64,000 bases of DNA from Thalia democratica (Eukaryota). The notes under the pieces are model-generated. The model worked only from the letters and a program-made list of their open reading frames with translations, made no database searches and was not told the origin of the DNA. Of this stretch, positions 7,713 to 55,949 are shown piece after piece (position 1 is the stretch's first letter; the number at the start of each line of letters is the position of its first letter). A program made the translations under genes and the position numbers. Location of the stretch: the NCBI GenBank assembly GCA_965202585.1, contig OZ241832.1:8122001-8186000 (forward strand), in the 5' to 3' direction.

Positions 7713-9021
7713 GCCCCTTTGTTAGCTAGTTACCCATTTATTTTTACGTCTCACTATTACCCCTAGCGGTGAAAATTTCCATCAAGGGGCGATGTTGCCT
7801 ACTTTAGGGAACTCTGCTCCACGCCACCACCAAACTGTACAACAGCTCAATCCGAGAAACTAATCCCAAAAAATGTCAGTTTCAATCAACAGATGACTGC
7901 AAAGCTGAGAATAGCTCGTCCTCAACTAATTTTTGAAAAACAATTTAGTGTGATAAACACTTTTTTCATTGATCTCATCTGAATTTTTACCATTGATAAC
8001 AATCCCTTGTTTTGGATTTTAATGATGATTTAAGACGTTAACTTTACTTTTTTTAAAACCACCTTAAATGAAGAGCAGAGGTTGCAATGTTTTAATCCTG
8101 CCGCATAAACAAATGATTAAATGAATGAAAAATAATATACAAAATCTTGTCGTGGTTGTTTAAGAAAAAAATTTAAAATGGCTGTCGTATATCTAAAATA
8201 AAAATTACTAAAATAAGTTTTTGTTGTTAAGTAAATTACTTTTTAATTGAAACATACGTTTATTAAACTGATCAAAATAAGAATTTCTCTGGTATAATGG
8301 TTTTCAAAGCTTAAAATTTGTAATTTGTCAACTTAAAACGTCTAACGAAACATCATAAAGTTAGAACAACTTTTGCACATCTTAAGCTTTGATATACTTT
8401 TGAAATTACACCCTGAAATACAGTTGAAAAAAAATAATTTAACCAAAACAAAAACGTGACAGTTGATAAATCTATCTCGAAATTAATCATAACAAACTGT
8501 TATTAAAGAAAAGTTGATGTTTATATGAAATTGTAAACAAGGTACCTTATTAACAACAAAAGAAAAATGCTTGCTAATATTTTGAATCTGTACGCTAAAA
8601 GCACAAAAGTTCTTCTTTGAAAACAGCAGTGTTTGAGTTAATTAAAAACATTTTTACACAGCTTAAAGTCAGCATTATAGTTTGCACTATGCTAAGCTAC
8701 GACTTACGAAGGGTAGAGTTTGAAACTGATGTTTTTGCCATAACAAATATAAACAAAAAGAACTGGTTAATAATAAAAAGATCAAAACAACATCAGTTAG
8801 CTACGGGTAGGTGTTACGAGCGGACAAAATTGCATAAAGGGACAAAATTGCACGAAGACACTTTTGCTCGTGGGGACATTTTTGCACAAAGGGTCATTTT
8901 TGATCAAGTGACAATTTTGCACAAGTTGAAGTTTTTAAATTATTTTGTTAATCTATTTTTTTTTAATTTGAAATACATATTTATTTTACTATCACTGTTA
9001 CCCTAACCCTTCCCTCGGTTG
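7713..9021 (+). repeat. Left arm of a long inverted duplication (partner 16501-17986)
   Basis: gcccctttgttagctagttacccattt (7713) is the reverse complement of aaatgggcaaccagctagcaaaggggc (ending 17986); about 7930-9021 matches about 17580-16501; ORF-track peptides 8617..9006(+) and 16572..16805(-) share MLSYDLRRVEFETDVF. Confidence 0.9.
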
Positions 9022-9384
9022 ATGACTTATTTATCAATTTTTTTATTAGTTATTATTTATTTTAACTGTCACTGTAACCCCTAACCCTACTTGTTGGTAG
9101 GTAACTTTTTTTTTATAATAGTTTTTATTAGTTATTATTTGTATTTTTATTTTACTATTACTGTTACCCCTGCCCCTTACCCTCGGTCAGTATTTATTTT
9201 TTGTTTTTTTAACTTAATCATTTTTCATTTTTTTGTTCTTTTTATTTTAATATTTTTCTGTGTTTTTTTACTTTCGTGCAAAATTGGCCATTTGTGCAAA
9301 ATCGTTTTCGTGCAATTTTGTGCACTCGTGCAATTTTGCGCACTCGTGCAATTTAGTTCCCTCGTGCAATTTAGACCCGTTCTC
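8805..9384. mobile_element. Non-autonomous Mutator/Foldback-like MITE (tttgcacga subrepeats, ccctaaccct core)
   Basis: Ends GGGTAGGTGTTAC and ACCCGTTCTC resemble the termini of the 41877-43918 element; no matching TSD on this copy. Confidence 0.7.
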
Positions 9385-11004: not shown

Positions 11005-11882
11005 GTTTTAACCATATTTATTTGATTCACGCACTATGATCTTAGAAGCATTAAAAACTTGTTTGTAAATATGTTTTTTGTAAATATTGCTATATCAACA
11101 TTAAAAAGTATTATAATTTATCTATTATCTTATGTTATGCTAACAAGCAGGTGCATTTTAAACTTAACTTTAAGACTTTATTTTTTATACTTTATGAAGT
11201 TTCAAAGGTTTCTGTTATAAAAGAAAATTAAAATTTGTTTTAAAATTACCAATTTCAAGGTCAAAGTTACACTTTTTTACTTGCGTTTTTTTGATAGTAA
11301 ACTGTTCACTTTAAAAGTACAAATAGAACTCTCTCAAATAAAAGTAGTTTAGATTAATGCATAAAATAAACACCATAGGTTAGGTTTAAAGTTATGAACA
11401 GCTTTTTTTAATTTTTGTTCATATCTATTCTTAAAAATTTTAAACTTTGTCGACTTTTAATCATTGCTTTCCTTTTTAAAAGTTTTTAACTCGCACCCAT
11501 AATATGCTCAGGTGTTATAGTTTATTGAACGACAAAAAAAGACGCTCAAAATATTTGGTTCTAGGACCTTACGCATGAAGAACCTTCGGTTATCGAGTCG
11601 CACACCACGGGTACCTTTTAAGGTCTTGTCCAGGACTTGCTTTAGCAAACCGGTATAATTTTATTTCTGCTATCCTAACCACCAAACAAAAAAAAAACAA
11701 GTAAAAAATTCTAAACTGTGCAAAAATGTCACAAAATCAAAACATTAAACAAAATTTTTCCAAAAACTTTTAATTATGACGTAGGCTTCTGTTTTTGGAT
11801 GCTTTTCATAAAAAACCAAAGAAAACCAAACCAATACTTTTCGTTTTCCGTTTTTGTTTTTTTTTGTCCAACATCAAAAATA

Positions 11883-13261
11883 ATGTCGGATCGAGCTCAA
11901 AATAGCAGTGACAATGCTGGTGATGTCATAGTTCCTGCTAGTAATAACAACGCTCACGGTAATAACGAAGACGTGCCTGCTATTAATAACAATGAGAATG
12001 ACAATGTTAATGCTAGTGAAAATGTTTCTGCCAGTGAAAATGCTACTGTTAATGCCAATAATCCTGCGAACGGTGGCAACGATTCCGAGATCATCGAAAG
12101 GACGTGCTCCGTGGACAACTGGGAGGAGCTGATGAGGAGCTACAAGACGTACTTCAGCGAGCTCAAGCTGGAAAACGAAGCCGAACCGACCGAAGAACAA
12201 GCCAAACGCAAGTTCGAGGAGCTCGCGGGGAGGCTGGAGTGTGACAAGAACGACAACGCGCTCTTCGACTCCCTGAAGGACCACGGCTTTCACAGCTGGC
12301 TCAGAGTGCTGCTCGGGCTGGAGGTGGTGCTGGATCTGCTGCGGAGGAACCTGCAAAAGGCCGCCGACCGGCTGTACGAGGAGTTCGCGAGAAAAAAAGA
12401 CGCGAACGCGAACGATGGAGGAGCTGTGGCAAAAGTTGGTGCGAACGTGAAGGGTGGTGGAAGTGCAGGCGGAAGTGGTGGAAAAAAAGCAAATGAGGTT
12501 ATATGTTGCACGAATGCTTTTGACAGCCTCGATGGCGACGAAATAGAACTCATCGACGGCATATACAACGAGTACAGAAGAGCGAAGAGAAATAGAACAG
12601 ACGCCAAAAACGCATGCAAGGAATTTTTCATTGATAACGTATCTGAAAAGTTAGAGGGTTCCTTGAATAACAATAGATTCGAATTTGAGTACACTGAACA
12701 ACAACGAGAAGATTTAAAAAGAAGCGGTAAAACTGTTACCAAAAAAACAAAACCAATGTTAGGAGATGATTTTATAAACAAATATAAAAATGTCACTCAA
12801 ATTCTGAGGTGGTTTTTAAAAAGGCTGGACAAAACGTCCACTCACGAGAAAAAAGAAATAAATGCAGATACCACCAGAGAAGAATACTTTCTCATCGCCT
12901 TGTCCGTGTTCCGGTTTTTAAACTGCGAGAACTGGAAAAGAAAAGGCGCAGGCAACCAGGAAGGGTTAGAGGCGGACAGCGGCAGCACGGGCTACAAGCT
13001 CAGGGTCGCCATAGTTTTCATGGGCTGGGGCCAGGAGTACGTCAAGTTCAGAGGCGACAGTGTCGGTTGTTACGACATGACCCCGTTGGCGAAGATGGCG
13101 GTGTCCGTGCGCAAGGATTTCCTTTTCAACGACAAGTACAAGACTCTGCAGGAGTCGGCCGATCCGAAGAAGACGGACAAGCCAGAAGAGAAGACTTTTA
13201 ACTTCTGGGTGAAGATGGTAAAGGATGTGAGAAACAAAATTCTCCACAGCGCAACTGACAG
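11883..13261 (+). CDS. Novel multidomain protein, exon 1: Asn-rich N-terminus plus CXorf38/DUF4559/DZIP3-like HEPN domain
   Basis: Open frame from ATG 11883; motifs SWLRVLLGLEVV, VAIVFMGWG, YDMTPLAKM and VKDVRNKILHS parallel CXorf38 NWLKAGHCL, VAKAFMPRG, DAVALL and IKCRNEIMHS. Donor either AG|gttgga (13261, phase 2) or AT|gtaaat (13277, phase 0). Confidence 0.75.
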
Positions 13262-13532
13262 GTTGGAATTTAGATATGTAAATATATATGATTTATTTTA
13301 TTTAAATATATTTTTACGTTGTATATTACTGCTTTTTTTTTATTGTAGTGTTTTCGTAATTTGTTTTATATTTTAATTTGTTTACATTTTGTTTTCTATT
13401 TATAACTTAAAAATAAAAGTTAGAACATCTTTTTTTGTCGTTCAAACTTCTGTACCATCCCGTTGTTTCCGACACTCTTTCCTACTTTCTAATTGTCTAA
13501 TTGTTAAAGCAAAATTTTTACAAAACGTTTAG

Positions 13533-14888
13533 GACGAAAAGCGAACTGAAAACCGCTTGCTTCTACGTATTGCACAGCTTTGTTCGACACTTGCGGGAGA
13601 ATAGGTTTTTTGAAATGTACGAGAAAAATGGTAATGGAGGCGGGAACGACGAAAATAACGGCGGGAATGGCAATGATGGCGCGGAAAGCAGTAATAGCAG
13701 GAAAGGCAATGATGGCGGGAGAGACCGCAAAGGCGGGAATGGCAATGATGACGACAGTGACGATGGTGGTAGCGGTAGAGGCGGGAACGGTGCAAGTACA
13801 ATACAAACCGCCGTTGTCGGCAAAAATGTTAACGGTAAAACCGAAAGTGAGGTAAGACGAAAAGAGCGAGAAAAAAAAAAGGCGCAGATGAGGATCTACG
13901 CGGAGGTGACGAAGAGCCTGAGGTTCGTGGAGACGGCGGACGTGAGGCTTCTGTTCGAGGGTGAGGTGACCAGGTCCACTCTCAACCTCTACCTGAACAA
14001 AAAGAAAAAGAAGGAGGGCGGGGCGGGCTCGAGCGGAGGTGGTAGGGGAGGAAGCAAAAGTGTGACAGCAGCAGCGCAGCAAGGAAGTAGCAACGCGCAA
14101 GGAGCAAATGAAGGCAATGGTGTGGCGAGCACCAGCAAAACTGTGTCAGCAGAAGCGCAGCAAGGAAGTAGCAACGCGCAAGGAGCAAATGAAGGCAATG
14201 ATGTGGCGAGCACCAGCAAAACTGTGACAAGAGAAGCGCAGCAAGGAAGTAGCAACGCGCAAGGAGCAAATGAAGGCAATGATGTGGCGAGCACCAGCAA
14301 AACTGTGACAAGAGAAGCGCAGCAAGGAAGTAGCAACGCGCAAGGAGCAAATGAAGGCAATGATGTGGCGAGCACCAGCAAAACTGTGCCAAGAGCAGCG
14401 CAGCAAGGAAGTAGCAACGCGCAAGGAGCAAATGAAGGCAATGATGTGGCGAGCACCAGCAAAACGGTGACAACAACAGCGCAGCAAGGAAGTAGCAACG
14501 CGCAAGGAGCAAATGAAGGCAATGATGTGGCGAGCACCAGCAAAACTGTGACAGCAGCAGCGCAGCAAGGAAGTAGCAACGCGCAAGGAGCAAATGAAGG
14601 CAATGATGTGGCGAGCACCAGCAAAACTGTGACAGCAGCAGCGCAGCAAGGAAGTAGCAACGCGCAAGGAGCAAATGAAGGCAATGATGTGGCGAGCACC
14701 AGCAAAACGGTGACAACAACAGCGCAGCAAGGAAGTAGCAACGCGCAAGGAGCAACAAAAGGAAAAAGTAATGGAAAGAATAAAAAAAAAAATAAAGATC
14801 AAGTGGAACTATCGGAGGAGTACAATAGCGCGAAAGGGCACAGAGCGCCCGTGAGGTTCAAGAAAATAGACGGCAATGACAAACTGCA
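13533..14888 (+). CDS. Novel multidomain protein, exon 2: G/N/D-rich linker, short helical segment, 27-aa repeat array
   Basis: Acceptor tttag| at 13532 (phase 2; alternative aaag| at 13509, phase 0), long open frame, perfect donor CA|gtgagt at 14889. Confidence 0.72.
14065..14755 (+). repeat. Coding tandem repeat, 81-bp / 27-aa unit, 8 full copies plus one partial
   Basis: AQQGSSNAQGANEGNDVASTSKTV+XXX units start every 81 nt from 14074 to 14722. Confidence 0.97.
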
Positions 14889-15157
14889 GTGAGTTAGATA
14901 GTTGAAATATTTTTTTCTTTGTAATGAGAGGCAGCTGTATGCTTTCATCTTGCAGTTTTAAATAAGTGCAGGCTTTATTTTAATACATTTTTATACCTAA
15001 GAAGTAGTCATAAACGCTTAATAATCACAAAGTTTGACCAAATCTTGGCACAAAACAAAAAACTTGAAGTTTTTTTCAAAAACTTTTCTTTACCGTCGTC
15101 AGTTTTCGCAAGCAAATTTTTTAATCGAGTTTGCTTCAACCACTTTTAAAATTGCAG

Positions 15158-16169
15158 GCTGAAGCCAGTGTTTTTGCCTGCGATGAAAACTCCAGGTGGA
15201 AAAGCACAGATGAAGTCCAAACTGCAAAACTGGAATAAAACTGATCAAAGTAACTTTCACGTCCTTGAAGAATTGCTGAAAATTAAAGACAAAAAAAAAC
15301 GTGTCGCGAAGGTTTTCAAGTTTTTCGAGAACGAGATCGATTGCGTCCAGCAGGAGTTCGAAGAATTCTCGGACAGCTGGAAGGTGGTAAACGATTACCT
15401 GAAGCCGAAGAAGAGGCAAACGCTGAGGGAAATCAACGAGAACTGGACGTTCTACAGGGAAGAGAAGCTGAAGGAAGCGGAAAAAGAAAAAGAAAAAGCA
15501 GAAAAAAAAGAAAAAGAAAAAGCAGAAAAAAAAGAAAAAGAAAAAGAGCAGAAGAAGAATGCGGGAGCAACAGCAAATAACAACCAGGGTCAACAACAAC
15601 TACAAACACAAGGATCAAACCAACAACAGCAAGGACCATCTGAACAACAAAAAGGAACAACAAATCAAGGCCAACCACCAAAACTAGGATCAGAAGAGCA
15701 ACAAAAACCGTTAAAACAACAACAACAACAAAAACAATCAGGATTACAACAACAANNNNNNNNNNNNNNNNNNNNNNNNNNNNNNNNNNNNNNNNNNNNN
15801 NNNNNNNNNNNNNNNNNNNNNNNNNNNNNNNNNNNNNNNNNNNNNNNNNNNNNNNNNNNNNNNNNNNNNNNNNNNNNNNNNNNNNNNNNNNAAGAACAGC
15901 TGTCGGCAATGCGAGGCAATGAGATCGGCAATGCGGGAAGCCAGAGCCGAGACGATGCTGGAAAAATTCTCGAGACCGCCAACGAAACCGCTGCAACCAC
16001 GATCGAACAGGTAAATGTTCTCGGGAGCTTGTCAGACGACAACGGGAACAGAAGCGCCGAAGGTGCAGGTCTCGATACAGCCATCCCTGCGCTAACACAA
16101 GAAGTGCAATCCGATAATGACGGCAATGACGAAGGTGGGGAGATAAGTGTAAGCATAACAGAAAATTAA
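15158..16169 (+). CDS. Novel multidomain protein, exon 3: helical segment, KE- and Q-rich tracts (spans assembly gap)
   Basis: attgcag| acceptor at 15157 is phase 2, matching the 14888 donor; frame stays open to TAA at 16167-16169, but continuity across the N-run is unverified. Confidence 0.72.
15756..15891. other. Assembly gap (136 N) inside a CAA/Gln-rich tract
   Basis: Run of N. Confidence 0.99.
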
Positions 16170-16310
16170 CGCCGCCTTAATGTGAAAGCACCAAATGTCA
16201 TTTTACCTGCAAAGTTTTGTGTGATTTTGTATACTCCAGCAATAAAGCGAATTTAAAACTTTTAGATCTTGTTTTTTTTTTGTTTTATATAAAGTAAGGT
16301 TGAAGTTAAC

Positions 16311-16689
16311 TAGAACGGGTCAAAACTGCACGAAGACAAACTTGTACGAAAGGTCAATTTTGCACAATGACAAATTGCCAGGGGGGGTCAATTTTGCAAA
16401 AAGGGTCATTTTTGCACGAGAGAAAAAAAAAAGATAAAAATTTGAAAGAAAAAAACTAAATGGTAAATAAGTACAAAAAATATATAAATATATAAAGCTA
16501 CCAACCGAGGGAAGGGTTAGGGTAACAGTGATAGTAAAAGTAAAATAAATATAATTAAATTAACAAAAAAATTAAAAAACTTCAACCAGTGCAAAAATGT
16601 TCCCACGTGCAAAAGTTACTCTTCGTGCAAAAGTGTCTTCGTGCATCTTTGTCCCCTCGTGCAATTTTGTCCGCTCGTGATACCTACCC
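16311..16689. mobile_element. Mutator/Foldback-like MITE, same family as 8805-9384
   Basis: Termini (t)AGAACGGGTC and TACCTACCC; flanks gaagttaac / gtagctaac match 7 of 9 (degenerate 9-bp TSD). Confidence 0.7.
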
Positions 16690-17986
16690 GTAGCTAACAG
16701 ATGTTGTTTTGATGTTTTAAAAATTAAACATTTTTTTTTGTTTATATTTGTTATGGTAAAAACATCAGTTTCAAACTCTACCCTTCGTAAGTCGTAGCTT
16801 AGCATAGTTCAAACTATAATGCTGACTTTAAGCTGTGTAAAAATGTTTTTATTTAACTCAAACACTGCTGTTTTCAAAGAAGAACTTTTGTGCTTTTAGC
16901 GTACAGATTCAAACTTTTAGCGAGCATTTTTCTTTTGTTGTTAATAAGGTACCTTGTTTACAACTTCATATAAACATCAACTAACTTTTCTTTAATAACA
17001 GTTTGTTATGATAACTTCGAGATAGATTTATCAACTGTCACTTTTTTTTTTTTGTTTTAATTAAATTATTATTTTTCAACTTTGTTTCATGGTGTGATTT
17101 AAAAAGTAAATCAAAGCTTTAGATGTGCAAAAGTTATTCAATATAAAGTTTATGTTGTTTCGTTTGACGTTTTAAGTTGACAAATTACAAATTTTAAGCT
17201 GGAAAACCATTATACCAGAATTTTTTTTTTTTGATCAGTTTAATAAACGTATGTTTTAATTGAAAAAATAATTTACTTAACAAAAATCATTTATATTAGT
17301 AATTTTTATTATAGATATACGACAGCCATTTTAAAATTTAGCTCTTTTTTTTTTAAACAACCATGACAAGTTTTTGTATATTATTTTCAATTCATTTAAC
17401 CATTTGTTTATGCTGCAGGAATAAAACATTGCAGCCTCTGCTCTTCATTTAAGGTGATATTAAAAAAAGTAAAATTAACGTCTTAAATCATCAGTTAAAT
17501 CCGAAACAAGGGATTGTTATCAATGGTAAAAATTCAGATGAGATCAATGAAAAAATGTTCATCACAATAAATTATTTTCATTATAACATGCTTCAAATAA
17601 AATTCAGACCTAAGCATGTTTTTTAAGCAAAAAAAATTATGATTTAAGCTTTTTAGTTTCAAGATTTGATTGAATCGATCTAAGGTCGTTTGCGGCTTTT
17701 GCATTCGTTTATACTTTACAGAGCAACTTACGCTCGTTTGATAAGTTTCGTGAAACCAACTCCAGTAGTGCGCTTTAAGGAGTTTTTTTTGTAAAATAAG
17801 TTTTGCTCATTTAGTATATAATTCTACGACCAGCTTACGAAAATTCTTTTAAGACTGACCTGACACATCTGGGGTGTTTGCGTAGAGCAGGGTAAAGTGG
17901 GCAACATAGCCCCTTGATGGCAGTTTTCACCACTAGGGGTCTTAGTGAGACGTAAAAGTAAATGGGCAACCAGCTAGCAAAGGGGC
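16501..17986 (-). repeat. Right arm of the long inverted duplication (partner 7713-9021)
   Basis: Reverse complement of the left arm, apart from a non-matching block at about 17580-17880 versus about 7825-7930. Confidence 0.9.
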
Positions 17987-18529: not shown

Positions 18530-19496
18530 AGAATGACACCGTTGATGGCGAACCGAAGAAAACTCTGCAGTCGACCAAAATGAAACGGCCTGACGCTTTC
18601 AACTTGCCATTTTTGAACTTGCTAGTATTACCCTGCAGCGCAGGCTCGCTTTCGAGCTCAACAAAGTTTACATTCTCACACCTAACAAGCCGCAAGTTGT
18701 AAAGAGAGTCCGAGCCTTGTCAGCAAGCAAACAACGCCCAACTTAATTTTTTAAACTCTTTTTTTTTTGTCAAACTTCAACAAATATTTTTCACGAACCC
18801 GGCAAAATTCTACCGGGTATTTCCAGTGGCAAATACGAAACCTTAAAACGACAGAAAGGTCGGAAGGTAGAAGAAACGGGAGTTTTACGACCTAAAAGGA
18901 TTTGTCGACTCTAATAACCTTAGGCAAAGCGGCGCGAAAGTCTTCGAGTTTTTCAAGAGATCGATTGCGTCCAGCAGAAGTTCGATGAGTTCTCGGACAG
19001 CTGGAAGGTGGTAAACGATTACCTGAAGCCGAAGAAGAGGCAAACGCTGAGGGAAATCAACGAGAACTGGACGTTCTACAGGGGAAAGAAGCAGAAGGAA
19101 GCTGGAAATAACGGAAATCAAGGAGACCAGAAGTATAAAATCAACAAAAACCAGGAGTAAGAACATCAAAACCATAAACGAAACAACTACAAATACAAGG
19201 ATTAAAACAATGATATACATCACAAAACCAACGATATCAATCACAAAGTGAAGGAATTTCACAAAAGCGAACTCAAAATCTACTCCAAAAACTAGGATCC
19301 AAACACCAGCAAGCAGAAAAATCAAAACAAATGAAATCACAATCGTATCTACAATGCAATAACACTAAGAATAACTGTAAAAAAATGTAAACAATAATGT
19401 CGTCAATTGTCCTAAAAACAGTGCGGTCCTGAAAATAACAATGACACCCGGAACGAGATCACTTGGCTTTAAAGCCGATTTCAACGGGAGGGAAGG
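18530..19496 (+). pseudogene. Relic paralogue of exon 3 of the 11883-16169 gene, interrupted by the LTR array
   Basis: About 18957-19105 is nearly identical to about 15338-15480 (EIDCVQQ...NWTFYR) with a small indel and frameshift; followed by a degenerate Q/N-rich tract; similar sequence resumes after 32718. Confidence 0.75.
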
Positions 19497-20800
19497 TGTA
19501 GGACACTTATGCAATATCTTATTTTGCCTTGTGTCCAAATTTTGATAACTTAAAGAAATTAATGTTAATCACTTGATATTATATTTTTCCTTTAAAAAAA
19601 ACAACAAATAAATATAGTAAAACTAATTCCCAAAAAAAACTATTTTTCACAAACAAAATAAGTGCTAGTTAAAATGATTTTTGTCTTTGATTTCTTGATT
19701 GAACTGGAAATAGCTTGTTTATGGGTGTGGCTAAGGGAAAATGAGAGAATCAAATGATAGATCAAGTGATCTACAGTTCAAAGTCCAGGAAAATGAGAGA
19801 ATCAAATGAGAGATCGCGTGATTATTGAAAATTCTAGAAAAAGAATCGAAAAACTATAAATACGCCCAATCAGAGCGTGAAGCAGGGCATTTACCTCGAA
19901 ACAAGCACGAAGCGACACTCTGCTGCTCGAAAATTTAAGCGTTAGCCGCCATCTTGGAAAAGCTAGATGACACCCGAGAAAACCTTCTTATACAACAACG
20001 TCGACGGGGCGAACAACTCGATTTGAGTTGTTAACGTGCCATAATCATAAGCCTACGCATACTGTAGCAGACAACTTCTTTGGATCAATTTGAACACTGA
20101 ATTCCACGATTGAGTCCACAGCGTTCAAAGAAAGAAACTTGAACATTCATCTTATTGAGCAAGCCCACACAGATTGTGGCGTCAACCTTAGCTACACTTC
20201 TACGAACAAGTTGTTTTCGTACTTTTAAATAATTCTGTCGTAATATTTATACATATTTATATTATCGTATCTATTTACTATTGTACTTGTATTGTAATAT
20301 TTATACATATTTATATCATCGTGCCTATTTATATTGTATTTTATCGCCACGCTCCGATTACGGGAAGGAAACGGAAGAAGATCAAGCCACGTACATCAAG
20401 ATTCTGTAAACGAGACGGACCAACGTCGAGTGCCAGAAACTGAGCGACCGGAGACCAGTGACACGTCTCCAGTGACACGTCAAGGAGGGAATCCAGAGCA
20501 CGTTTTCCTTCTAATTGTTAACTTTAAGTGTTTAGACTTATTGTGAGCTGTCATTGCGTTTATTTGTACATAATAAAACAACATTACTTAGTTTTATTAT
20601 ATTTAGTTATATAAATTATATAGTTATGTCCTTAAAACCCCTAAAAAAGGCATTAGTCTTGAAAGTGCCACGCACACAAACGTGCACCGAAATGAGTTGT
20701 TCCGAGACTACTGCTAACCTGGAATCTGATGAGATTGTCGAGCCTGAGACCGAGGCAATTTCGAAGGAAATCAGTGAGGCTACAAGTCCGGGTAACAATA
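19497..20800 (+). repeat. LTR 1 (1304 bp)
   Basis: Same sequence at 25454-26757 and 31411-32714 as far as I can read; contains TATAAAT, internal direct repeats and AATAAA (20572). Confidence 0.85.
19855..19956 (+). promoter_or_regulatory. Putative LTR promoter: TATA box and YY1-like motif
   Basis: TATAAAT at 19855-19861, GCCGCCATCTTG at 19945-19956, and a duplicated ggaaaatgagagaatcaaatga upstream; repeated in each LTR. Confidence 0.5.
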
Positions 20801-23262
20801 ATGGCGTCCTCCGCAGCAACCATCTGCCAACCACTGAAGACAACACTAAAAAAATAAACGAATTAACTAAACTAGTAGAAAATAGTAACAAACTAATAGA
20901 AGATAGATTTAATACTATTTTAAAAACAATTTCTTTACAGAATTCTCAATCAATCAACACCCCTGCAAGAAGTGTGGTAAGTTCAGTTAATTGTTTTAAT
21001 TCACATATAAACTTGACAGACTCGCCCTCAGCCAGTATATATATGATGACCAAAACAACGGCTGCCAACAATCCTACGTTCCTTCAAGACTCCCTAAACA
21101 CAAGAACATCACAAATATCCAGTTATCAAGTCACAGCTGTAACACAAACACTCCCTACTACATCAATGAGTTCAACAAATTCATCGTTAGACAGTTTTTC
21201 ACGACCATATTCCCATCAAAAAAAACTAAATTCTAACCTAAAGTTTGATCAATCAAATGAAAAAAAATTAAGTCACTTTTACGGCAGTAGTTCAAATATC
21301 GAGCAGCTTAAACGACAGATCGATATTCTACAAAATAAAGTGAACAAAACTCCCAATTGTTATACAGATTCGAATCAGACTAATGGCAATCATATCTCTT
21401 TCAATCAAGAATCTTCGCCCGAGAATCAAAACTTCCACAAAGCAACAAATACAAGGCGTTTTCCAGAGCGAATGTTTAGGAAAATTAAAGGAAAAAATCC
21501 GAGAGAGGAGTTCAAATTGTTTGAGCTTCAGTGTAAAAGCCAGGGCATTTTCGATGATACAACTCAGTTTGAAATCATAATTAGAATATGGCCAATTAAT
21601 GATATACTTTACTATGTAAAAATTGGTAAACCATCTAGCTATGTCTGTTTCAAACAAGAAATCTTAAGCATGACACCATGCTTACCGGATATACACAAAC
21701 CTCCACCTATTTGGAGTCATACCCCAACTTTTAAAGACATTCATCAGTTGGTATCGAAAAGTCTTACTTGCTCGCCAGATGACCTCTACAAACATCTTAC
21801 TATTAGTTATAGTCCCAAATGGGCGAGTAAAATTCTAATAAAAGACCTTGAACTTCCTATCAAGAAGTTTAAGAACCGTCTTATGTGGATTCTCGAACAA
21901 GGCCCAACTGATTTGAAAATGAGTTATTATAGTAAAAAATCAAATAACCAATATAAGTTGAATAATAAATCTAAAAGGACATTTCATCAAAACCGAAATG
22001 AAAATTATTCGCAACCTAATCAAAACATAAACAACTACTCAAAAGACTATAGACAACATCAAAGTAATTTTAGTAATAAAAAACTTAACAGATGTCGCTA
22101 TCATGTTCGTTTTGGTGAGAAAGCTAAAAATTGTGAAGGCTCGCAATGTAAAATGTACAAAAAATTTGTAGAAAATAAAATAAAATATTTTAAGCAAAAA
22201 TCAACAATGGTAAAAAAAGAACTATTTATCGAAGAAAGGTTGAAAAGAGGAAAATTGAAGTGCACATGTGAAAATAAATCAATAAGAATCAAAGAAGCAA
22301 GTTCGTGCTCAACCTATAAAACACTTAACGAAAAACTTAAACAAAAGTCAATTGAACCAAAAAGAAAATATAGCAAATTTCGAGAAAATGAAGTACTCTG
22401 TGAAACAAAGTCAAATATAAGTACCAAACTACTATTTATTACAGATAAATATAATAAAATACCTTATTTGTTTGATATCAATGCACAACATTTGATTATT
22501 TCTAAGGGATTAATTAGTTCATATGAAGAAGATGATTTAGTACCTGAAATTTGGAACGTCTGGGGAAATGATATGAAAGCTCTAGGATATACAACTCTAA
22601 AGGTCAACATTGGTTTACAACAAAGTTTACCTCACAAGTTTTATGTAATAGAATCAAACAACCCTTTTGCTATTCTTGGCTCAAATTTTATAGTAAAGAG
22701 AAATTTAACAATCAATGCAAAGGAAAAAACGATAACACAAACAGAAACAGGAGTTAAACTTAAACTCGAACTGTCAGATCCTTCTCGTAAAAAAACCATT
22801 AGAAAAGAAGTAAAAAATTATTTAGAAACTTTTCCCGTAATCGCAAAAGAATCAAGTAACAGAGAAAAACCACAACATAACCATGTTCTTGATATGAAAC
22901 TCAAAAACGAAGTCTTGCCTCGTCATAAAAAAGCTATAGCACCGATTGCAATAATATCAAAAACAAAAGAAAACATCTTCAACAAGTTGTCAAAAGGAAG
23001 CATTCCAAAAACAATTGATAATGATAAAAACAACCTCCCAATATCATTTTTACCAACCGTCAAAAAGTGTGTAAACAAAACAATTAAATTAACTAAAGCT
23101 GTAATTTTGTTTTCTAAAAAGTGGAACAGTACTCAGAAAGTAATTTCTTTACATAGTAATCGATCTCTTAGTTGTTTAATAGAAACAAAGAAAATTACAA
23201 GAGACAACTTTTATCTCCAACAAAAAAATGACCTTAAAGACTACACGCATCTCGTCACTTAA
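20626..23262 (+). CDS. Gag-protease-like polyprotein (878 aa from the first ATG), no RT/RNase H/integrase
   Basis: Gag-like F.LFELQCKSQGIFDDTTQFEII; CRYHVRFGEKAKNCEGSQC (CX2HX9CX4C); retropepsin-like LLFITDK...YLFDINA...ILGSNF; then a linker resembling the pre-RT region and a stop. Confidence 0.8.
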   Translation: MSLKPLKKALVLKVPRTQTCTEMSCSETTANLESDEIVEPETEAISKEISEATSPGNNNGVLRSNHLPTTEDNTKKINELTKLVENSNKLIEDRFNTILKTISLQNSQSINTPARSVVSSVNCFNSHINLTDSPSASIYMMTKTTAANNPTFLQDSLNTRTSQISSYQVTAVTQTLPTTSMSSTNSSLDSFSRPYSHQKKLNSNLKFDQSNEKKLSHFYGSSSNIEQLKRQIDILQNKVNKTPNCYTDSNQTNGNHISFNQESSPENQNFHKATNTRRFPERMFRKIKGKNPREEFKLFELQCKSQGIFDDTTQFEIIIRIWPINDILYYVKIGKPSSYVCFKQEILSMTPCLPDIHKPPPIWSHTPTFKDIHQLVSKSLTCSPDDLYKHLTISYSPKWASKILIKDLELPIKKFKNRLMWILEQGPTDLKMSYYSKKSNNQYKLNNKSKRTFHQNRNENYSQPNQNINNYSKDYRQHQSNFSNKKLNRCRYHVRFGEKAKNCEGSQCKMYKKFVENKIKYFKQKSTMVKKELFIEERLKRGKLKCTCENKSIRIKEASSCSTYKTLNEKLKQKSIEPKRKYSKFRENEVLCETKSNISTKLLFITDKYNKIPYLFDINAQHLIISKGLISSYEEDDLVPEIWNVWGNDMKALGYTTLKVNIGLQQSLPHKFYVIESNNPFAILGSNFIVKRNLTINAKEKTITQTETGVKLKLELSDPSRKKTIRKEVKNYLETFPVIAKESSNREKPQHNHVLDMKLKNEVLPRHKKAIAPIAIISKTKENIFNKLSKGSIPKTIDNDKNNLPISFLPTVKKCVNKTIKLTKAVILFSKKWNSTQKVISLHSNRSLSCLIETKKITRDNFYLQQKNDLKDYTHLVT
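20802..20816 (+). other. Putative primer-binding site
   Basis: TGGCGTCCTCCGCAG begins one base after the LTR end (also at 26759); cognate tRNA not assigned. Confidence 0.5.
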
Positions 23263-25453: not shown

Positions 25454-26757
25454 TGTAGGACACTTATGCAATATCTTATTTTGCCTTGTGTCCAAATTTT
25501 GATAACTTAAAGAAATTAATGTTAATCACTTGATATTATATTTTTCCTTTAAAAAAAACAACAAATAAATATAGTAAAACTAATTCCCAAAAAAAACTAT
25601 TTTTCACAAACAAAATAAGTGCTAGTTAAAATGATTTTTGTCTTTGATTTCTTGATTGAACTGGAAATAGCTTGTTTATGGGTGTGGCTAAGGGAAAATG
25701 AGAGAATCAAATGATAGATCAAGTGATCTACAGTTCAAAGTCCAGGAAAATGAGAGAATCAAATGAGAGATCGCGTGATTATTGAAAATTCTAGAAAAAG
25801 AATCGAAAAACTATAAATACGCCCAATCAGAGCGTGAAGCAGGGCATTTACCTCGAAACAAGCACGAAGCGACACTCTGCTGCTCGAAAATTTAAGCGTT
25901 AGCCGCCATCTTGGAAAAGCTAGATGACACCCGAGAAAACCTTCTTATACAACAACGTCGACGGGGCGAACAACTCGATTTGAGTTGTTAACGTGCCATA
26001 ATCATAAGCCTACGCATACTGTAGCAGACAACTTCTTTGGATCAATTTGAACACTGAATTCCACGATTGAGTCCACAGCGTTCAAAGAAAGAAACTTGAA
26101 CATTCATCTTATTGAGCAAGCCCACACAGATTGTGGCGTCAACCTTAGCTACACTTCTACGAACAAGTTGTTTTCGTACTTTTAAATAATTCTGTCGTAA
26201 TATTTATACATATTTATATTATCGTATCTATTTACTATTGTACTTGTATTGTAATATTTATACATATTTATATCATCGTGCCTATTTATATTGTATTTTA
26301 TCGCCACGCTCCGATTACGGGAAGGAAACGGAAGAAGATCAAGCCACGTACATCAAGATTCTGTAAACGAGACGGACCAACGTCGAGTGCCAGAAACTGA
26401 GCGACCGGAGACCAGTGACACGTCTCCAGTGACACGTCAAGGAGGGAATCCAGAGCACGTTTTCCTTCTAATTGTTAACTTTAAGTGTTTAGACTTATTG
26501 TGAGCTGTCATTGCGTTTATTTGTACATAATAAAACAACATTACTTAGTTTTATTATATTTAGTTATATAAATTATATAGTTATGTCCTTAAAACCCCTA
26601 AAAAAGGCATTAGTCTTGAAAGTGCCACGCACACAAACGTGCACCGAAATGAGTTGTTCCGAGACTACTGCTAACCTGGAATCTGATGAGATTGTCGAGC
26701 CTGAGACCGAGGCAATTTCGAAGGAAATCAGTGAGGCTACAAGTCCGGGTAACAATA
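25454..26757 (+). repeat. LTR 2 (shared central LTR)
   Basis: Copy of 19497-20800 at +5957. Confidence 0.85.
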
Positions 26758-29219
26758 ATGGCGTCCTCCGCAGCAACCATCTGCCAACCACTGAAGACAA
26801 CACTAAAAAAATAAACGAATTAACTAAACTAGTAGAAAATAGTAACAAACTAATAGAAGATAGATTTAATACTATTTTAAAAACAATTTCTTTACAGAAT
26901 TCTCAATCAATCAACACCCCTGCAAGAAGTGTGGTAAGTTCAGTTAATTGTTTTAATTCACATATAAACTTGACAGACTCGCCCTCAGCCAGTATATATA
27001 TGATGACCAAAACAACGGCTGCCAACAATCCTACGTTCCTTCAAGACTCCCTAAACACAAGAACATCACAAATATCCAGTTATCAAGTCACAGCTGTAAC
27101 ACAAACACTCCCTACTACATCAATGAGTTCAACAAATTCATCGTTAGACAGTTTTTCACGACCATATTCCCATCAAAAAAAACTAAATTCTAACCTAAAG
27201 TTTGATCAATCAAATGAAAAAAAATTAAGTCACTTTTACGGCAGTAATTCAAATATCGAGCAGCTTAAACGACAGATCGATATTCTACAAAATAAAGTGA
27301 ACAAAACTCCCAATTGTTATACAGATTCGAATCAGACTAATGGCAATCATATCTCTTTCAATCAAGAATCTTCGCCCGAGAATCAAAACTTCCACAAAGC
27401 AACAAATACAAGGCGTTTTCCAGAGCGAATGTTTAGGAAAATTAAAGGAAAAAATCCGAGAGAGGAGTTCAAATTGTTTGAGCTTCAGTGTAAAAGCCAG
27501 GGCATTTTCGATGATACAACTCAGTTTGAAATCATAATTAGAATATGGCCAATTAATGATATACTTTACTATGTAAAAATTGGTAAACCATCTAGCTATG
27601 TCTGTTTCAAACAAGAAATCTTAAGCATGACACCATGCTTACCGGATATACACAAACCTCCACCTATTTGGAGTCATACCCCAACTTTTAAAGACATTCA
27701 TCAGTTGGTATCGAAAAGTCTTACTTGCTCGCCAGATGACCTCTACAAACATCTTACTATTAGTTATAGTCCCAAATGGGCGAGTAAAATTCTAATAAAA
27801 GACCTTGAACTTCCTATCAAGAAGTTTAAGAACCGTCTTATGTGGATTCTCGAACAAGGCCCAACTGATTTGAAAATGAGTTATTATAGTAAAAAATCAA
27901 ATAACCAATATAAGTTGAATAATAAATCTAAAAGGACATTTCATCAAAACCGAAATGAAAATTATTCGCAACCTAATCAAAACATAAACAACTACTCAAA
28001 AGACTATAGACAACATCAAAGTAATTTTAGTAATAAAAAACTTAACAGATGTCGCTATCATGTTCGTTTTGGTGAGAAAGCTAAAAATTGTGAAGGCTCG
28101 CAATGTAAAATGTACAAAAAATTTGTAGAAAATAAAATAAAATATTTTAAGCAAAAATCAACAATGGTAAAAAAAGAACTATTTATCGAAGAAAGGTTGA
28201 AAAGAGGAAAATTGAAGTGCACATGTGAAAATAAATCAATAAGAATCAAAGAAGCAAGTTCGTGCTCAACCTATAAAACACTTAACGAAAAACTTAAACA
28301 AAAGTCAATTGAACCAAAAAGAAAATATAGCAAATTTCGAGAAAATGAAGTACTCTGTGAAACAAAGTCAAATATAAGTACCAAACTACTATTTATTACA
28401 GATAAATATAATAAAATACCTTATTTGTTTGATATCAATGCACAACATTTGATTATTTCTAAGGGATTAATTAGTTCATATGAAGAAGATGATTTAGTAC
28501 CTGAAATTTGGAACGTCTGGGGAAATGATATGAAAGCTCTAGGATATACAACTCTAAAGGTCAACATTGGTTTACAACAAAGTTTACCTCACAAGTTTTA
28601 TGTAATAGAATCAAACAACCCTTTTGCTATTCTTGGCTCAAATTTTATAGTAAAGAGAAATTTAACAATCAATGCAAAGGAAAAAACGATAACACAAACA
28701 GAAACAGGAGTTAAACTTAAACTCGAACTGTCAGATCCTTCTCGTAAAAAAACCATTAGAAAAGAAGTAAAAAATTATTTAGAAACTTTTCCCGTAATCG
28801 CAAAAGAATCAAGTAACAGAGAAAAACCACAACATAACCATGTTCTTGATATGAAACTCAAAAACGAAGTCTTGCCTCGTCATAAAAAAGCTATAGCACC
28901 GATTGCAATAATATCAAAAACAAAAGAAAACATCTTCAACAAGTTGTCAAAAGGAAGCATTCCAAAAACAATTGATAATGATAAAAACAACCTCCCAATA
29001 TCATTTTTACCAACCGTCAAAAAGTGTGTAAACAAAACAATTAAATTAACTAAAGCTGTAATTTTGTTTTCTAAAAAGTGGAACAGTACTCAGAAAGTAA
29101 TTTCTTTACATAGTAATCGATCTCTTAGTTGTTTAATAGAAACAAAGAAAATTACAAGAGACAACTTTTATCTCCAACAAAAAAATGACCTTAAAGACTA
29201 CACGCATCTCGTCACTTAA
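26583..29219 (+). CDS. Second copy of the Gag-protease-like ORF
   Basis: Same as 20626-23262 except S to N (G21290 vs A27247). Confidence 0.8.
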   Translation: MSLKPLKKALVLKVPRTQTCTEMSCSETTANLESDEIVEPETEAISKEISEATSPGNNNGVLRSNHLPTTEDNTKKINELTKLVENSNKLIEDRFNTILKTISLQNSQSINTPARSVVSSVNCFNSHINLTDSPSASIYMMTKTTAANNPTFLQDSLNTRTSQISSYQVTAVTQTLPTTSMSSTNSSLDSFSRPYSHQKKLNSNLKFDQSNEKKLSHFYGSNSNIEQLKRQIDILQNKVNKTPNCYTDSNQTNGNHISFNQESSPENQNFHKATNTRRFPERMFRKIKGKNPREEFKLFELQCKSQGIFDDTTQFEIIIRIWPINDILYYVKIGKPSSYVCFKQEILSMTPCLPDIHKPPPIWSHTPTFKDIHQLVSKSLTCSPDDLYKHLTISYSPKWASKILIKDLELPIKKFKNRLMWILEQGPTDLKMSYYSKKSNNQYKLNNKSKRTFHQNRNENYSQPNQNINNYSKDYRQHQSNFSNKKLNRCRYHVRFGEKAKNCEGSQCKMYKKFVENKIKYFKQKSTMVKKELFIEERLKRGKLKCTCENKSIRIKEASSCSTYKTLNEKLKQKSIEPKRKYSKFRENEVLCETKSNISTKLLFITDKYNKIPYLFDINAQHLIISKGLISSYEEDDLVPEIWNVWGNDMKALGYTTLKVNIGLQQSLPHKFYVIESNNPFAILGSNFIVKRNLTINAKEKTITQTETGVKLKLELSDPSRKKTIRKEVKNYLETFPVIAKESSNREKPQHNHVLDMKLKNEVLPRHKKAIAPIAIISKTKENIFNKLSKGSIPKTIDNDKNNLPISFLPTVKKCVNKTIKLTKAVILFSKKWNSTQKVISLHSNRSLSCLIETKKITRDNFYLQQKNDLKDYTHLVT

Positions 29220-52281: not shown

Positions 52282-54651
52282 TCAACTAGAGCTACTGCGG
52301 TGGACATTACAAAACAACAGTTCCTCGCAGAGTTCAACTTCTAATTCAACATGTTTCCTACTCCCAACCACAATTTCCTTAGTGTTTCTGCTGAACACGA
52401 ACGCACTTTGCTGCCAGTACTCAACCTGACACTTTCCTTCAAGAGTTGTGACTGTTACATCAGGAGTAACTTGGATATCAAACCAATACACTACAGCATC
52501 CAATTTTCCATTGTTGTTGAAACTGACATTGATTTTTTTACTCAAAACATCTTCACTTGTGCTAAGAGAGTTCATTTTAGCCGAAATTATGTCATCAAAC
52601 AGCATGAAAGGAGAAGACAATTTCGAACAGTCCAGACAGTTTAAGTTCAAGCCACTGAAACTGGACACGCAGTAGTTGTTGAGAACTGAGTCGATCCCGT
52701 GCAGTTTGTTGGACTCATCCAACACTTTGCACCTGGACAAAAGTTCTCTTGAGCTCAAGCACTGGCCTTTGACTTTAAGCTTATGAGGCAGAACTAATGC
52801 TGAACTGCCGACCTTTGCAGACTTTACACATTTGCAGTGAGCCTCGAGGCTGCCTTTTGAAAGCATCCCATCCTGTTCAACCAAGTCACTGACAATCACG
52901 TCAAATTTTTCTTTCATGGCCAAGTCCAGCTTGTTGGTAACTACCACCTGGTTCCTGAGCACGCCGCTTGCAAATTTCTTGTAAAACCTTTTCATGACTT
53001 TCAGTTTGCTCGATCCCAGAGTTACATAGTGACAAATTTGAATCTTGTTTCTGTGGTTCAAACGCAGCAAGTGTGTGGCAACTGGATTGAAACTTGATGA
53101 AATTATCAGAACTTTGACAGGTCTCACTTGGCCTTTTACAGTTAACAGTGCTGATTCTGGTATAGAATCAATGTACTTTTCACACTCAGCAACGTAGTGT
53201 TTGTAATAAGTAGGGTTGTTCAACTTCAAAACGTGGTTTTCAGACACAAACATATGGTTGCTTTTTACCAAGGACCTGTCAATGTGCTGCGAGACGTTTT
53301 TGTCATTCATTCTCACAGACTTGAGTTGCAGGCCCTTTAGACACAGGTTAAAATTACAAGCCACACTAAGAGGTGATTCCCTGTTGACAGAGGAAAAATC
53401 CAAATTCTTTAAAGGAAATATTGCTTGTTGCCAACAGGATTTATTCCCAAAAGGGGAATTTGTTAACATAAACTCCCCTTCTTTGTCTAAATCTACCTCA
53501 AACCATTGGACGAGACAGTTGAAGTTTTTTTCAGGCTTCAGTTCAAAATTACAACTGATATCTTGGTTAAGATATAACTCAACGTGTGATTGATCGCACA
53601 AGTCCAGATTAAGCACTTCAACAGTATTTGAAACAACTTGATGATCAAAGTCATTCAAGTACTCGCAAGTATAAGGCTCCAGAGCAGTCAGACTGTTGTA
53701 CGAACTGCTAGGCTTTCCAAACAAATTTACAGCACCGCTAGAAATTATCAGATCATCATCATGGTCCACATACTGGTGCTTTAATTTAAATGTCTCACAG
53801 TTCACCAGAGCACATTTTATTCTTACTCTGCTGGGCAGAAAAGTGCCATCTCTGGCAAGTAGTTTTTCATGGGCATGCAGAAAAGTAGGCAAAAAGTGCT
53901 CACCAAAGAAACTGGCGTCAAATATCTCACAGAAGATCAAAGAATATTTTTGCTGGAGTTGTGCGGAATTGCATGTTTTCAAAGTTATTTTATCATTACA
54001 GTTGTTCAACTTGAAGCATTCTTTTGCGATGGACGCCATCAGCTCTGACTCTTCACACGCGTGCACTCTCAAAAAGGACTCACACTTGGCCGCCATCAGT
54101 GACAAAAGCCCAGTGCCACACCCAATATCGAGAACAGGCATATGTCTCAAGGAGGCAGGGATAAAAGACAAGCATTTTTCAATTGCCTTCTGATACTGAG
54201 AGTTCCTGTTGACGTCATTCAGCATGGAAAAGTGCCAACACTGCATCATGCTGCTGCTCAAATTTTCCATGTTTGCAACAACTTGCACGTTACAAGGATC
54301 CAAGTAGTAACTTTTGAGCAAGAGGTTCAAGCTGGGCAGCTTTATGCCAATTTTAAAAAGGCACATTGCCATGTGAAAATGCAACTGAGGGCATTCGTCA
54401 AAAACTTTAACCGCCTCCTCATACAAACTCATGACGTCTTGCGCTTTGTTTAAACTCACCAGTTTATCCACCCAGATCTTCCACGTGAGCCCGAACTCTC
54501 TGCTTATGACCGGTTTCAGCTGGTTCGCGTAGTCTCCGCCTATTTTGAGTGAAAGGAGGTAGTAAGCAAACGCCTTTCCGTGGTTGCCCTCATTGCCGCA
54601 TTGCCTGGCAAGCTGGCAGTAATTTCTGCTGTTGTCAGCAGCACTGTTCAT
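52282..54651 (-). CDS. PRMT9: Protein arginine N-methyltransferase 9-like (TPR-like N-terminus, two MTase modules), single coding exon, 789 aa
   Basis: WHFSMLNDVNRN, VLDIGCGTGLLSLMAA, double-E loop CEIFDASFFGE, CWQQA (CW in place of the THW loop, as in PRMT9), second module ending YWQQSAF; the ORF-track start at 54717 is upstream of the likely ATG. Confidence 0.88.
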   Translation of the reverse strand: MNSAADNSRNYCQLARQCGNEGNHGKAFAYYLLSLKIGGDYANQLKPVISREFGLTWKIWVDKLVSLNKAQDVMSLYEEAVKVFDECPQLHFHMAMCLFKIGIKLPSLNLLLKSYYLDPCNVQVVANMENLSSSMMQCWHFSMLNDVNRNSQYQKAIEKCLSFIPASLRHMPVLDIGCGTGLLSLMAAKCESFLRVHACEESELMASIAKECFKLNNCNDKITLKTCNSAQLQQKYSLIFCEIFDASFFGEHFLPTFLHAHEKLLARDGTFLPSRVRIKCALVNCETFKLKHQYVDHDDDLIISSGAVNLFGKPSSSYNSLTALEPYTCEYLNDFDHQVVSNTVEVLNLDLCDQSHVELYLNQDISCNFELKPEKNFNCLVQWFEVDLDKEGEFMLTNSPFGNKSCWQQAIFPLKNLDFSSVNRESPLSVACNFNLCLKGLQLKSVRMNDKNVSQHIDRSLVKSNHMFVSENHVLKLNNPTYYKHYVAECEKYIDSIPESALLTVKGQVRPVKVLIISSSFNPVATHLLRLNHRNKIQICHYVTLGSSKLKVMKRFYKKFASGVLRNQVVVTNKLDLAMKEKFDVIVSDLVEQDGMLSKGSLEAHCKCVKSAKVGSSALVLPHKLKVKGQCLSSRELLSRCKVLDESNKLHGIDSVLNNYCVSSFSGLNLNCLDCSKLSSPFMLFDDIISAKMNSLSTSEDVLSKKINVSFNNNGKLDAVVYWFDIQVTPDVTVTTLEGKCQVEYWQQSAFVFSRNTKEIVVGSRKHVELEVELCEELLFCNVHRSSSS

Positions 54652-55949
54652 ATTAATAAAGTTTCTGCAAAAATTACAGATAACTAATTTTTTGGAATGT
54701 CTATAACTTATCTGCAAATGAAGTTTATTTAAAGAGGTAAACTAAATTTTTAATAATGTTAGACAAGAATTTATTTGAAATAAAAGATTATTTATAATAT
54801 TATAAATTTATATACAAACTTCTTAAAATTTAAATTTTTTGAAAAAGAGATAAACGAAATTTTTAAACTGTATGATTATGTGTTAAACTTGTTAAATGCA
54901 TCACTCTTCATATAAACTTTTTGATGACGTTTTAGTCCAGTCTTAGTCTTATTTACCTATTTTTTCAATTTTGAAGTATCTTGGTTTTATATATCTTAAA
55001 TGTTGAAGTTTAAAATTATTTGTGTAATTACCTAGCATGATGTCGCACCAATATTGAGCTGAAAAATGTTATATTCAAAGTCTATTTTAACAATAATATT
55101 AGGCTAAAAACTGATGTTTTATAAATACATAAATTGAATTAAACTTATTAATCATAAACTTACAAAAATTGAATATTTTATTGATTCTATTTTACAATAA
55201 AGCAAACAAATGAATACAATACTTTATATTGATTACAACATTGTAAAATAAAAGCAATTAAATATTTAAGTTTTATTAGTTTATGATAAAAAAAATATGT
55301 TTCTTTTATGGGTTATATAGCTTGTTAAAACAGTATTTTAGTTTTTTTGTTAAAAAATTATTATTTTATTTTTATTTTTTAAATTCTATTCCGACAGAAT
55401 TTTTTATTTATAAATAATTTTTAATATTTAAATATTGCAAGAAACATTTCCTGAAAATTTGAGGCAGTTATCTCAATAAATGTAGGAGAAGATAGATTTT
55501 TAGTGATTCTAATTGTTTGCCGTTTTAGTTTGCGCCTCCCATAAGGATCCTATTGTTGCCTCCGACTTTGACCTGTTACATCTCAAAAATTGTTTTGAAT
55601 TTTTATAATCTGTAAAAGGCATCTTGTAGATTAGTAAAAACTATATAAAATAAGATCAAAAACCAAAAAAGGGTGTTTACCCCCCCCCTATGCCCTTAAT
55701 CTAGTATTATAATGAATACATTAGCATTAAATAACTATCTTTAAACTTAATAATTAACTATTTTACTGATATATTATTCAGAAAAAACAAAAAAATTAAA
55801 TTAAATTAAAAACTGTTTTGAAAAATGTAGTTTCTGAAAATTGTATTGGTAGAATTAATTTTAGTCTAATAAAACTAAAATGAAAAAAAACTTATGGTTT
55901 TGCAATAGTAATTATTATATACAGCTACAAAAAAATTCAACAAAAATGG

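Follow-up and report, generated by a model that had tools for sequence, protein, structure and literature searches.

A spliced, transcribed three-exon gene of the pelagic tunicate Thalia democratica with a candidate, very divergent HEPN domain

The subject of this study is a gene of Thalia democratica, a pelagic tunicate, that lies on the forward strand of a 64,000-nucleotide stretch of contig OZ241832.1 (positions 8,122,001 to 8,186,000; "the window," in which all positions given here are counted). The gene spans positions 11883-16169, is spliced and transcribed, and encodes a long protein in which a helical region is followed by low-complexity sequence; the last part of that region is a candidate for a highly divergent HEPN domain, the fold shared by a superfamily of RNases and their inactive relatives. 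A reading made from the sequence alone had described this locus as three joined open reading frames (ORFs) encoding a protein of about 1,248 residues, subject to the length of an assembly gap, with a HEPN nuclease domain like those of CXorf38 and DZIP3 in a new architecture. The gene model in that proposal held up well; the HEPN assignment found only partial support.

Gene structure and transcription

The gene model comprises the following features.

11883, forward strand: ATG, the putative start codon; no RNA contig lies over the 5' third of exon 1
11883-13261, forward strand: exon 1, with residues 1-459 and 2 nucleotides of codon 460; its parts are the N-rich tail of residues 1-70, a helical region, the Gly/Ala-rich loop of residues 171-205 and the candidate HEPN part
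13262-13532, forward strand: intron 1, 271 nucleotides, GT..AG, placed within codon 460 between the RNxxxH motif and the next helix
13533-14888, forward strand: exon 2, encoding the helix of residues 463-490, a G/N/D-rich stretch, a basic segment, 27-residue repeats and a K-rich end
14889-15157, forward strand: intron 2, 269 nucleotides, GTGAGT..CAG
15158-16169, forward strand: exon 3, encoding a K/E-rich helical part, (KEKEKAEK)n, a Q-rich stretch, the gap and an acidic tail, and ending in TAA
15756-15891, no strand: assembly gap of 136 N, the sole run of N in the window, its length an estimate
16241-16246, forward strand: AATAAA, 72 nucleotides past the stop codon

Our findings establish that this three-exon gene is real, spliced and transcribed, and that its model is well supported. 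The three ORFs share one frame: a codon is divided 2+1 at each junction, and the phases of the GT-AG introns fit as had been proposed. The RNA evidence comes from contigs of two marine metatranscriptome runs (X1 and X2), with two DNA-like runs (X3 and X5) for comparison. The junction 13261/13533 is present in X1 (a 559-nucleotide contig whose shorter side measures 152 nucleotides; joint 13259>13531, cut +2), and the junction 14888/15158 is present in both X1 (328 nucleotides) and X2 (244 nucleotides, with zero mismatches). RNA depth falls to about zero inside the introns (0.04 in bin 13371-13531 and 0 in bin 14981-15141), and X3 and X5 run through the introns and show no splice joints there. 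With spliced RNA contigs in hand for both junctions, the concern that the ORFs might be unspliced or unexpressed no longer applies.

Elsewhere in the gene, RNA contigs cover positions 12484-12646 and 12853-13259 of exon 1; 13531-13664, 13798-14019 and 14697-14888 of exon 2; and 15158-15364, 15628-15706 and 15892-16170 of exon 3. Past the stop codon they reach 16264, beyond which the depth drops, and the AATAAA at 16241-16246 is likely the polyadenylation signal. At the other end, the ATG at 11883 is preferred over an in-frame ATG near 11800, which was ruled out as the start because a 2-nucleotide indel variant at 11857 would break the frame.

The assembly gap interrupts exon 3. As written, with 136 N, the joined frame has 1,248 codons, that is, 1,202 known residues and 46 X, in agreement with the length first suggested. 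The frame of exon 3 meets the start of the gap exactly at a codon boundary, and on the 3' side only the frame from 15894 is open, running 91 codons to the TAA at 16167-16169; the other two frames meet stops within 10 and 41 codons. That the frames on either side coincide under the nominal 136 N carries no weight, since the gap length is an estimate. The part past the gap is transcribed and behaves as coding sequence, because RNA contigs cover 15892-16170 and one of them carries an in-frame 12-nucleotide length variant at 15915. A reading frame continuous across the gap would be the simplest reading; none of the records used spans it.

The reading frame is preserved among variants, in at least three variant sequences. 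The length variants found in the exons are +6, -3, -3, -3, -12 and +54 nucleotides, the last seen as a 45-nucleotide back-step with 9 intervening letters, and a single +1/-1 pair lying 5 nucleotides apart. Indels of 1-2 nucleotides are confined to one site upstream of the ATG (11857, 2 nucleotides), two in intron 2 (14910 and 15010, 1 nucleotide each) and one past the stop (16267). An 18-nucleotide repeat occupies 11997-12041 in the N-rich start of the protein, where X5 has the 54-nucleotide in-frame expansion, and the length of the N-terminal tail therefore varies.

Organization of the protein

The segments of the protein, and the elements within them on which the HEPN question turns, are as follows.

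Residues 1-70: N-rich
Residues 71-170: helical, L/E-rich
Residues 171-205: G/A/K-rich
Residues 206-492: mixed, globular-like composition
Residues 493-565: G/N/D-rich, with a basic segment next
12291-12395, forward strand: residues 137-171, N-terminal conserved helix, HSWLRVLLGLEVV...DRLYEEFARK; the sole part with a detectable relative
13182-13253, forward strand: residues 434-457, predicted helix with the motif near its C-terminal end; candidate HEPN helix 3
13230-13247, forward strand: R450-N-K-I-L-H455 (Rx4H, with N after R)
13540-13623, forward strand: residues 463-490, hydrophobic helix of 28 residues; candidate HEPN helix 4
14053-14755, forward strand: residues 641-880, tandem array of 81 nucleotides x 8.7 copies (96% matches and no indels by Tandem Repeats Finder)
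Downstream of the repeats: K-rich, K/E-rich helical, Q-rich (broken by the gap) and acidic stretches

The start of the protein is not signal-peptide-like. Its helical region extends overall over residues 71-492 and is followed by about 750 residues of low complexity, which make up more than half of the protein. The repeat modules noted in the sequence-only reading are present as 8.7 near-identical copies of a 27-residue unit (AQQGSSNAQGANEGNDVASTSKTVTxx), and the 81-nucleotide array is young or homogenized, because its units match at 96%. If the protein is HEPN, what had been taken for a new architecture would be a low-complexity tail rather than a domain architecture that is new as the term is commonly used. 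The peptide strings that had been listed for exon 1 are all there, among them RNKILH, encoded at 13230-13247 as R450 to H455.

Evidence for a HEPN domain

Three lines of evidence point to a HEPN fold at the end of the helical region: the motif itself, its placement relative to the helices, and the neighbors of the protein in a language-model feature space. Profile searches returned no HEPN match. R450-NKIL-H455 is the only R[NDH]xxxH in the 1,202 known residues, and it fits a pattern of the HEPN superfamily, Rx4-6H in which the arginine precedes a polar residue (N, D or H). In both AlphaFold models, residues 434-457 are assigned to a helix by DSSP, and this is the best-scored part, with a predicted local distance difference test score (pLDDT) of 46-69 (55-69 in one model). 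After the motif come, in order, the end of that helix, the residues DRTKS, the putative 28-residue hydrophobic helix of residues 463-490, and low-complexity sequence from residue 493. Such a placement, in which the motif closes a predicted helix and a loop and another helix come next, would agree with the published description of HEPN domains, which also has N, D or H after the arginine and, in helix 2, an upstream conserved acidic residue, typically as Ex3[KR] (PMC3710099). E167-x3-K171 in the N-terminal conserved helix may correspond to this Ex3[KR], a kind of pattern that many K/E-rich helices show.

The third line comes from the Atlas tool, for which scores below 0.9 are leads only. For residues 295-459, 57 of the 100 nearest feature neighbors were HEPN_Swt1 and 40 more were named Swt1-like HEPN, at scores of 0.83-0.86, with HEPN_DZIP3 accounting for a single neighbor; for residues 70-459 the 100 neighbors included 47 HEPN_Swt1, 8 HEPN_DZIP3 and 4 DUF4559, at a score of 0.70. 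The family named by these neighbors is the one that had been predicted beforehand from the motif.

On this evidence we consider a HEPN fold somewhat probable. The reading we favor, with roughly even confidence, is that of a transcribed three-exon gene whose product contains a Swt1-like HEPN domain that has diverged very far, and that the domain is an active RNase is predicted with a similarly balanced degree of assurance. The end of the helical region would be a HEPN domain of the Swt1-like clade, where CXorf38 has been placed. R450-N-x3-H455 would stand at the end of helix 3, the short loop after it would be split by intron 1, and helix 4 would open exon 2. Helices 1-2 may come from the conserved helix of residues 137-171, which contains E167-x3-K171, and a very large insert would then separate them from helix 3; in an alternative layout, the domain would be compact and occupy approximately residues 329-492. 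Inserts of up to 60 residues have been described in HEPN domains (PMC3710099), whereas one of about 260 residues would be needed here if residues 137-171 are helices 1-2. The insert of some 190 residues that had been proposed to replace a Cys-rich segment is likewise hypothetical and depends on the same assignment. An active motif would make the protein a metal-independent RNase, like other HEPN RNases, which would probably act after the pairing of two HEPN domains, and the repeat-rich tail would then serve self-association or localization.

Searches, relatives and the case for a protein of another kind

A different explanation, to which we give a substantial minority chance, is that this is a fast-evolving, lineage-restricted protein unrelated to HEPN, in which long, disordered, repeat-rich sequence follows a helical region of unrecognized fold and RNKILH arose by chance; given the K-rich and Q-rich stretches, a nuclear or condensate-forming protein would be an example. 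On this side, and against a HEPN domain, stand the profile, sequence and fold tests, which were without exception negative or uninformative. When exon 1 was scanned by hmmscan against Pfam, whole and in four pieces, no family of any kind was matched at E<=10, including PF15112 and PF18738, the two profiles against which the sequence-only reading had asked to be checked, and PF18731. NCBIfam, PADLOC and PHROGs likewise yielded no HEPN family at E<=10. Across exons 1-3, hmmscan returned only low-scoring matches, far under the cut-offs, to TAF4, DUF7799, DUF4879, ZorA and phrog_19529, and phmmer against the sequences of the PDB produced chance-level matches only.

Structure prediction, also suggested at the outset, was carried out and gave little to work with. 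Without an alignment, AlphaFold produced poor models, with pLDDT values of 39.2 for 390 residues and 44.6 for 174 residues. When the 174-residue model was compared by Foldseek with Swiss-Prot models and PDB structures, and by shape in Atlas, no match was better than an E value of about 1 or a template modeling (TM) score of 0.37, which is noise; because the models are so poor, these fold searches are uninformative.

Relatives are equally scarce. Against 1.84 billion cluster representatives, phmmer with residues 70-459 found one match, a 109-residue fragment (P0001; E value, 1.3e-5) that is 48% identical over query residues 58-103, in the helix HSW(L/I)R.LLGLE...D.LY.EF. E167-x3-K171 is invariant between the two, and P0001 is without the Gly-rich loop. 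On its contig (L001, 563 nucleotides, from a metagenome assembly in ENA), the matching part is preceded by a polypyrimidine-AG and followed by a GT, and it looks, from these signals, like a separate exon in the genomic DNA of a related organism; being framed in this way, it indicates an exon structure that differs from the single large exon 1 of the gene described here. Word-seeded protein searches with exon 1 whole, with residues 295-459 and with a 165-residue piece alone found no match. Metagenome contig scans with the P0001 alignment and with the C-terminal piece found no relative, and an Atlas feature search with the 54-residue N-terminal helix returned nothing. So far, the gene has been found only in a narrow lineage.

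Some points temper the positive evidence. The probability that this protein holds one or more R[NDH]xxxH by chance is about 0.066. The Atlas scores all fall under the tool's own line of 0.9; the tool states that a third of shuffled proteins receive ten concordant family matches; and the language-model features may have keyed on the same short motif. Finally, the listed variants comprise 10 synonymous and 26 non-synonymous changes, near the value expected under little constraint, which suggests that constraint is weak over most of a protein of which more than half is of low complexity. Over residues 330-459 there were 3 synonymous and 4 non-synonymous variants, the changes being conservative, in a sample that is small and partial.

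Two observations speak against the explanation without HEPN. The nearest language-model clusters are almost all HEPN, of a family predicted beforehand, and the motif has the position given in the description of HEPN: it closes a predicted helix, which is followed by a loop and then by the last helix of the candidate domain.

Comparison with known HEPN families

If the domain is a HEPN domain, it would represent a new, very divergent family or variant inside the known superfamily. The CXorf38/DUF4559 family (PF15112) is an animal family, with members reported in tunicates (Ciona), that has been assigned to the Swt1-like clade (PMC3710099). The protein shares with it the RNxxxH motif, human CXorf38 having RNEIMH at residues 162-167 where this protein has RNKILH (four of six residues identical), and DUF4559 clusters are among its language-model neighbors. 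The two differ in several respects. The HEPN domain of CXorf38 contains an inserted, Cys-rich Zn ribbon (PMC3710099, Table 1), whereas the first 500 residues here hold only 8 scattered cysteines (residues 75, 120, 208, 209, 245, 348, 396 and 469), without a paired CxxC or any Zn ribbon. The spacing between candidate elements is far longer, none of the partners of the family (dsRBD, NACHT, DEATH, CARD and ankyrin) is found in the protein, and there was no PF15112 match at E<=10. Thus, the likeness to CXorf38 that had been seen in exon 1 does not extend to membership, and an assignment to CXorf38/DUF4559 proper is not supported by the sequence comparison.

The Swt1-like HEPN domains (PF18731) are closer by language-model features, in that they account for 97 of the 100 nearest clusters for residues 295-459, which is a lead only, and the motif is intact here as in their active versions. 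Active solo versions from bacteria have expanded in Daphnia, Naegleria and dictyostelids, and the spread of the family among eukaryotes is lineage specific (PMC3710099). In contrast to these solos of about 110-130 residues, the protein described here has a low-complexity tail of about 750 residues and a long N-terminal extension, and it has no PF18731 HMM (hidden Markov model) match.

The Swt1 comparison also raises the prospect of a HEPN fold that does not cut RNA and instead forms an RNA-binding or regulatory module, as proposed for the eukaryotic Swt1 HEPN. Inactive versions have been described in the Swt1 family (PMC3710099), the type to which the nearest feature clusters belong, but those versions have lost Rx4-6H, whereas R, N and H are all kept here, and we regard an inactive domain as decidedly unlikely.

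The DZIP3/hRUL138-like HEPN domains (PF18738) resemble the favored candidate in their N-terminal position, in Rx4H and in the N after R, and a few of their clusters occur among the feature neighbors (8 of 100 for residues 70-459 and 1 of 100 for residues 295-459). They occur in multidomain proteins of invertebrates, and in marine invertebrates the gene families concerned change quickly (PMC9646362). Unlike those proteins, this one has no NACHT, TPR, RING, LRR or death domain and no PF18738 match, and the searches made here showed no expansion of the gene. The expansion of the KEN domain (the RNase L-type HEPN) in Oikopleura offers an earlier example, among pelagic tunicates, of HEPN genes specific to one lineage (PMC3710099). 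The KEN domain belongs to another family, its HEPN fold being circularly permuted, and nothing here points to it.

Genomic surroundings

The gene is the sole long ORF within an interval bounded by the arms of an inverted repeat, at 7713-9028 and 16495-17986, which consist of several blocks that are 76-93% complementary. In the DNA runs, word depth exceeds 22,000 at 11600-11760 and 16269-16400, and dozens of contigs end at 11636 and 16313; since depth jumps to such values, very high-copy short repeats, similar to miniature inverted-repeat transposable elements (MITEs), abut both ends of the gene. Joints in the DNA runs from 11636 to AT-rich places were rejected as deletions, their sides being only 20-25 nucleotides long and starting at the edge of the high-copy repeat. 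Downstream, a decayed copy of part of exon 3 lies at 18933-19210 on the forward strand, with 92% nucleotide identity to 15305-15483 and stops on both sides. The exon 3 bin 15303-15463 has 3-4 times the depth of its neighbors in the DNA runs, which indicates further copies of this piece elsewhere in the genome. The inverted repeats and decayed paralogue of the sequence-only reading are therefore both in place. Such surroundings fit a dynamic region, from which a defense function does not follow.

That the gene is the cargo or by-product of a mobile element, decaying and without a function for the host, is suggested by the inverted repeats, the high-copy DNA at both ends and the decayed fragment 3.6 kb downstream, but is very improbable given the depth of about 60-130 over the gene itself, which marks it as low-copy, its spliced introns, the frame kept in at least three variant sequences, and the restriction of the duplication to part of exon 3.

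Other genes in the window include a single-exon ORF of 811 residues at 52285-54717 on the reverse strand, with a methyltransferase domain, a PRMT_C match (8e-16) and an N-terminal part resembling helical repeats; by these matches it is a gene of the protein arginine methyltransferase type. Two ORFs of 902 residues each lie on the forward strand at 20554-23262 and 26511-29219, 5,957 nucleotides apart. A Pfam scan of one of them found no match at E<=0.001, an odd outcome if they are read as gag-protease.

Implications

Animal HEPN repertoires are thought to act in RNA-level defense. A bolder form of the favored reading would make this gene the founder of an unrecognized HEPN family restricted to pelagic tunicates, in which an active RNxxxH RNase domain, split by an unusually large insert, would be attached to a fast-evolving tail of tandem repeats and Q-rich sequence; through self-assembly of that tail, the RNase could associate with itself and serve antiviral or anti-transposon defense. 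We think this unlikely. Should the HEPN assignment be wrong, the gene would encode an ordinary orphan protein of low complexity. If it is right, the profile libraries now in use do not detect this family, and counts of animal HEPN domains would be too low for tunicates and other lineages that evolve fast. This gene of Thalia democratica would then offer a compact test case for a kind of animal HEPN domain that has yet to be assayed.

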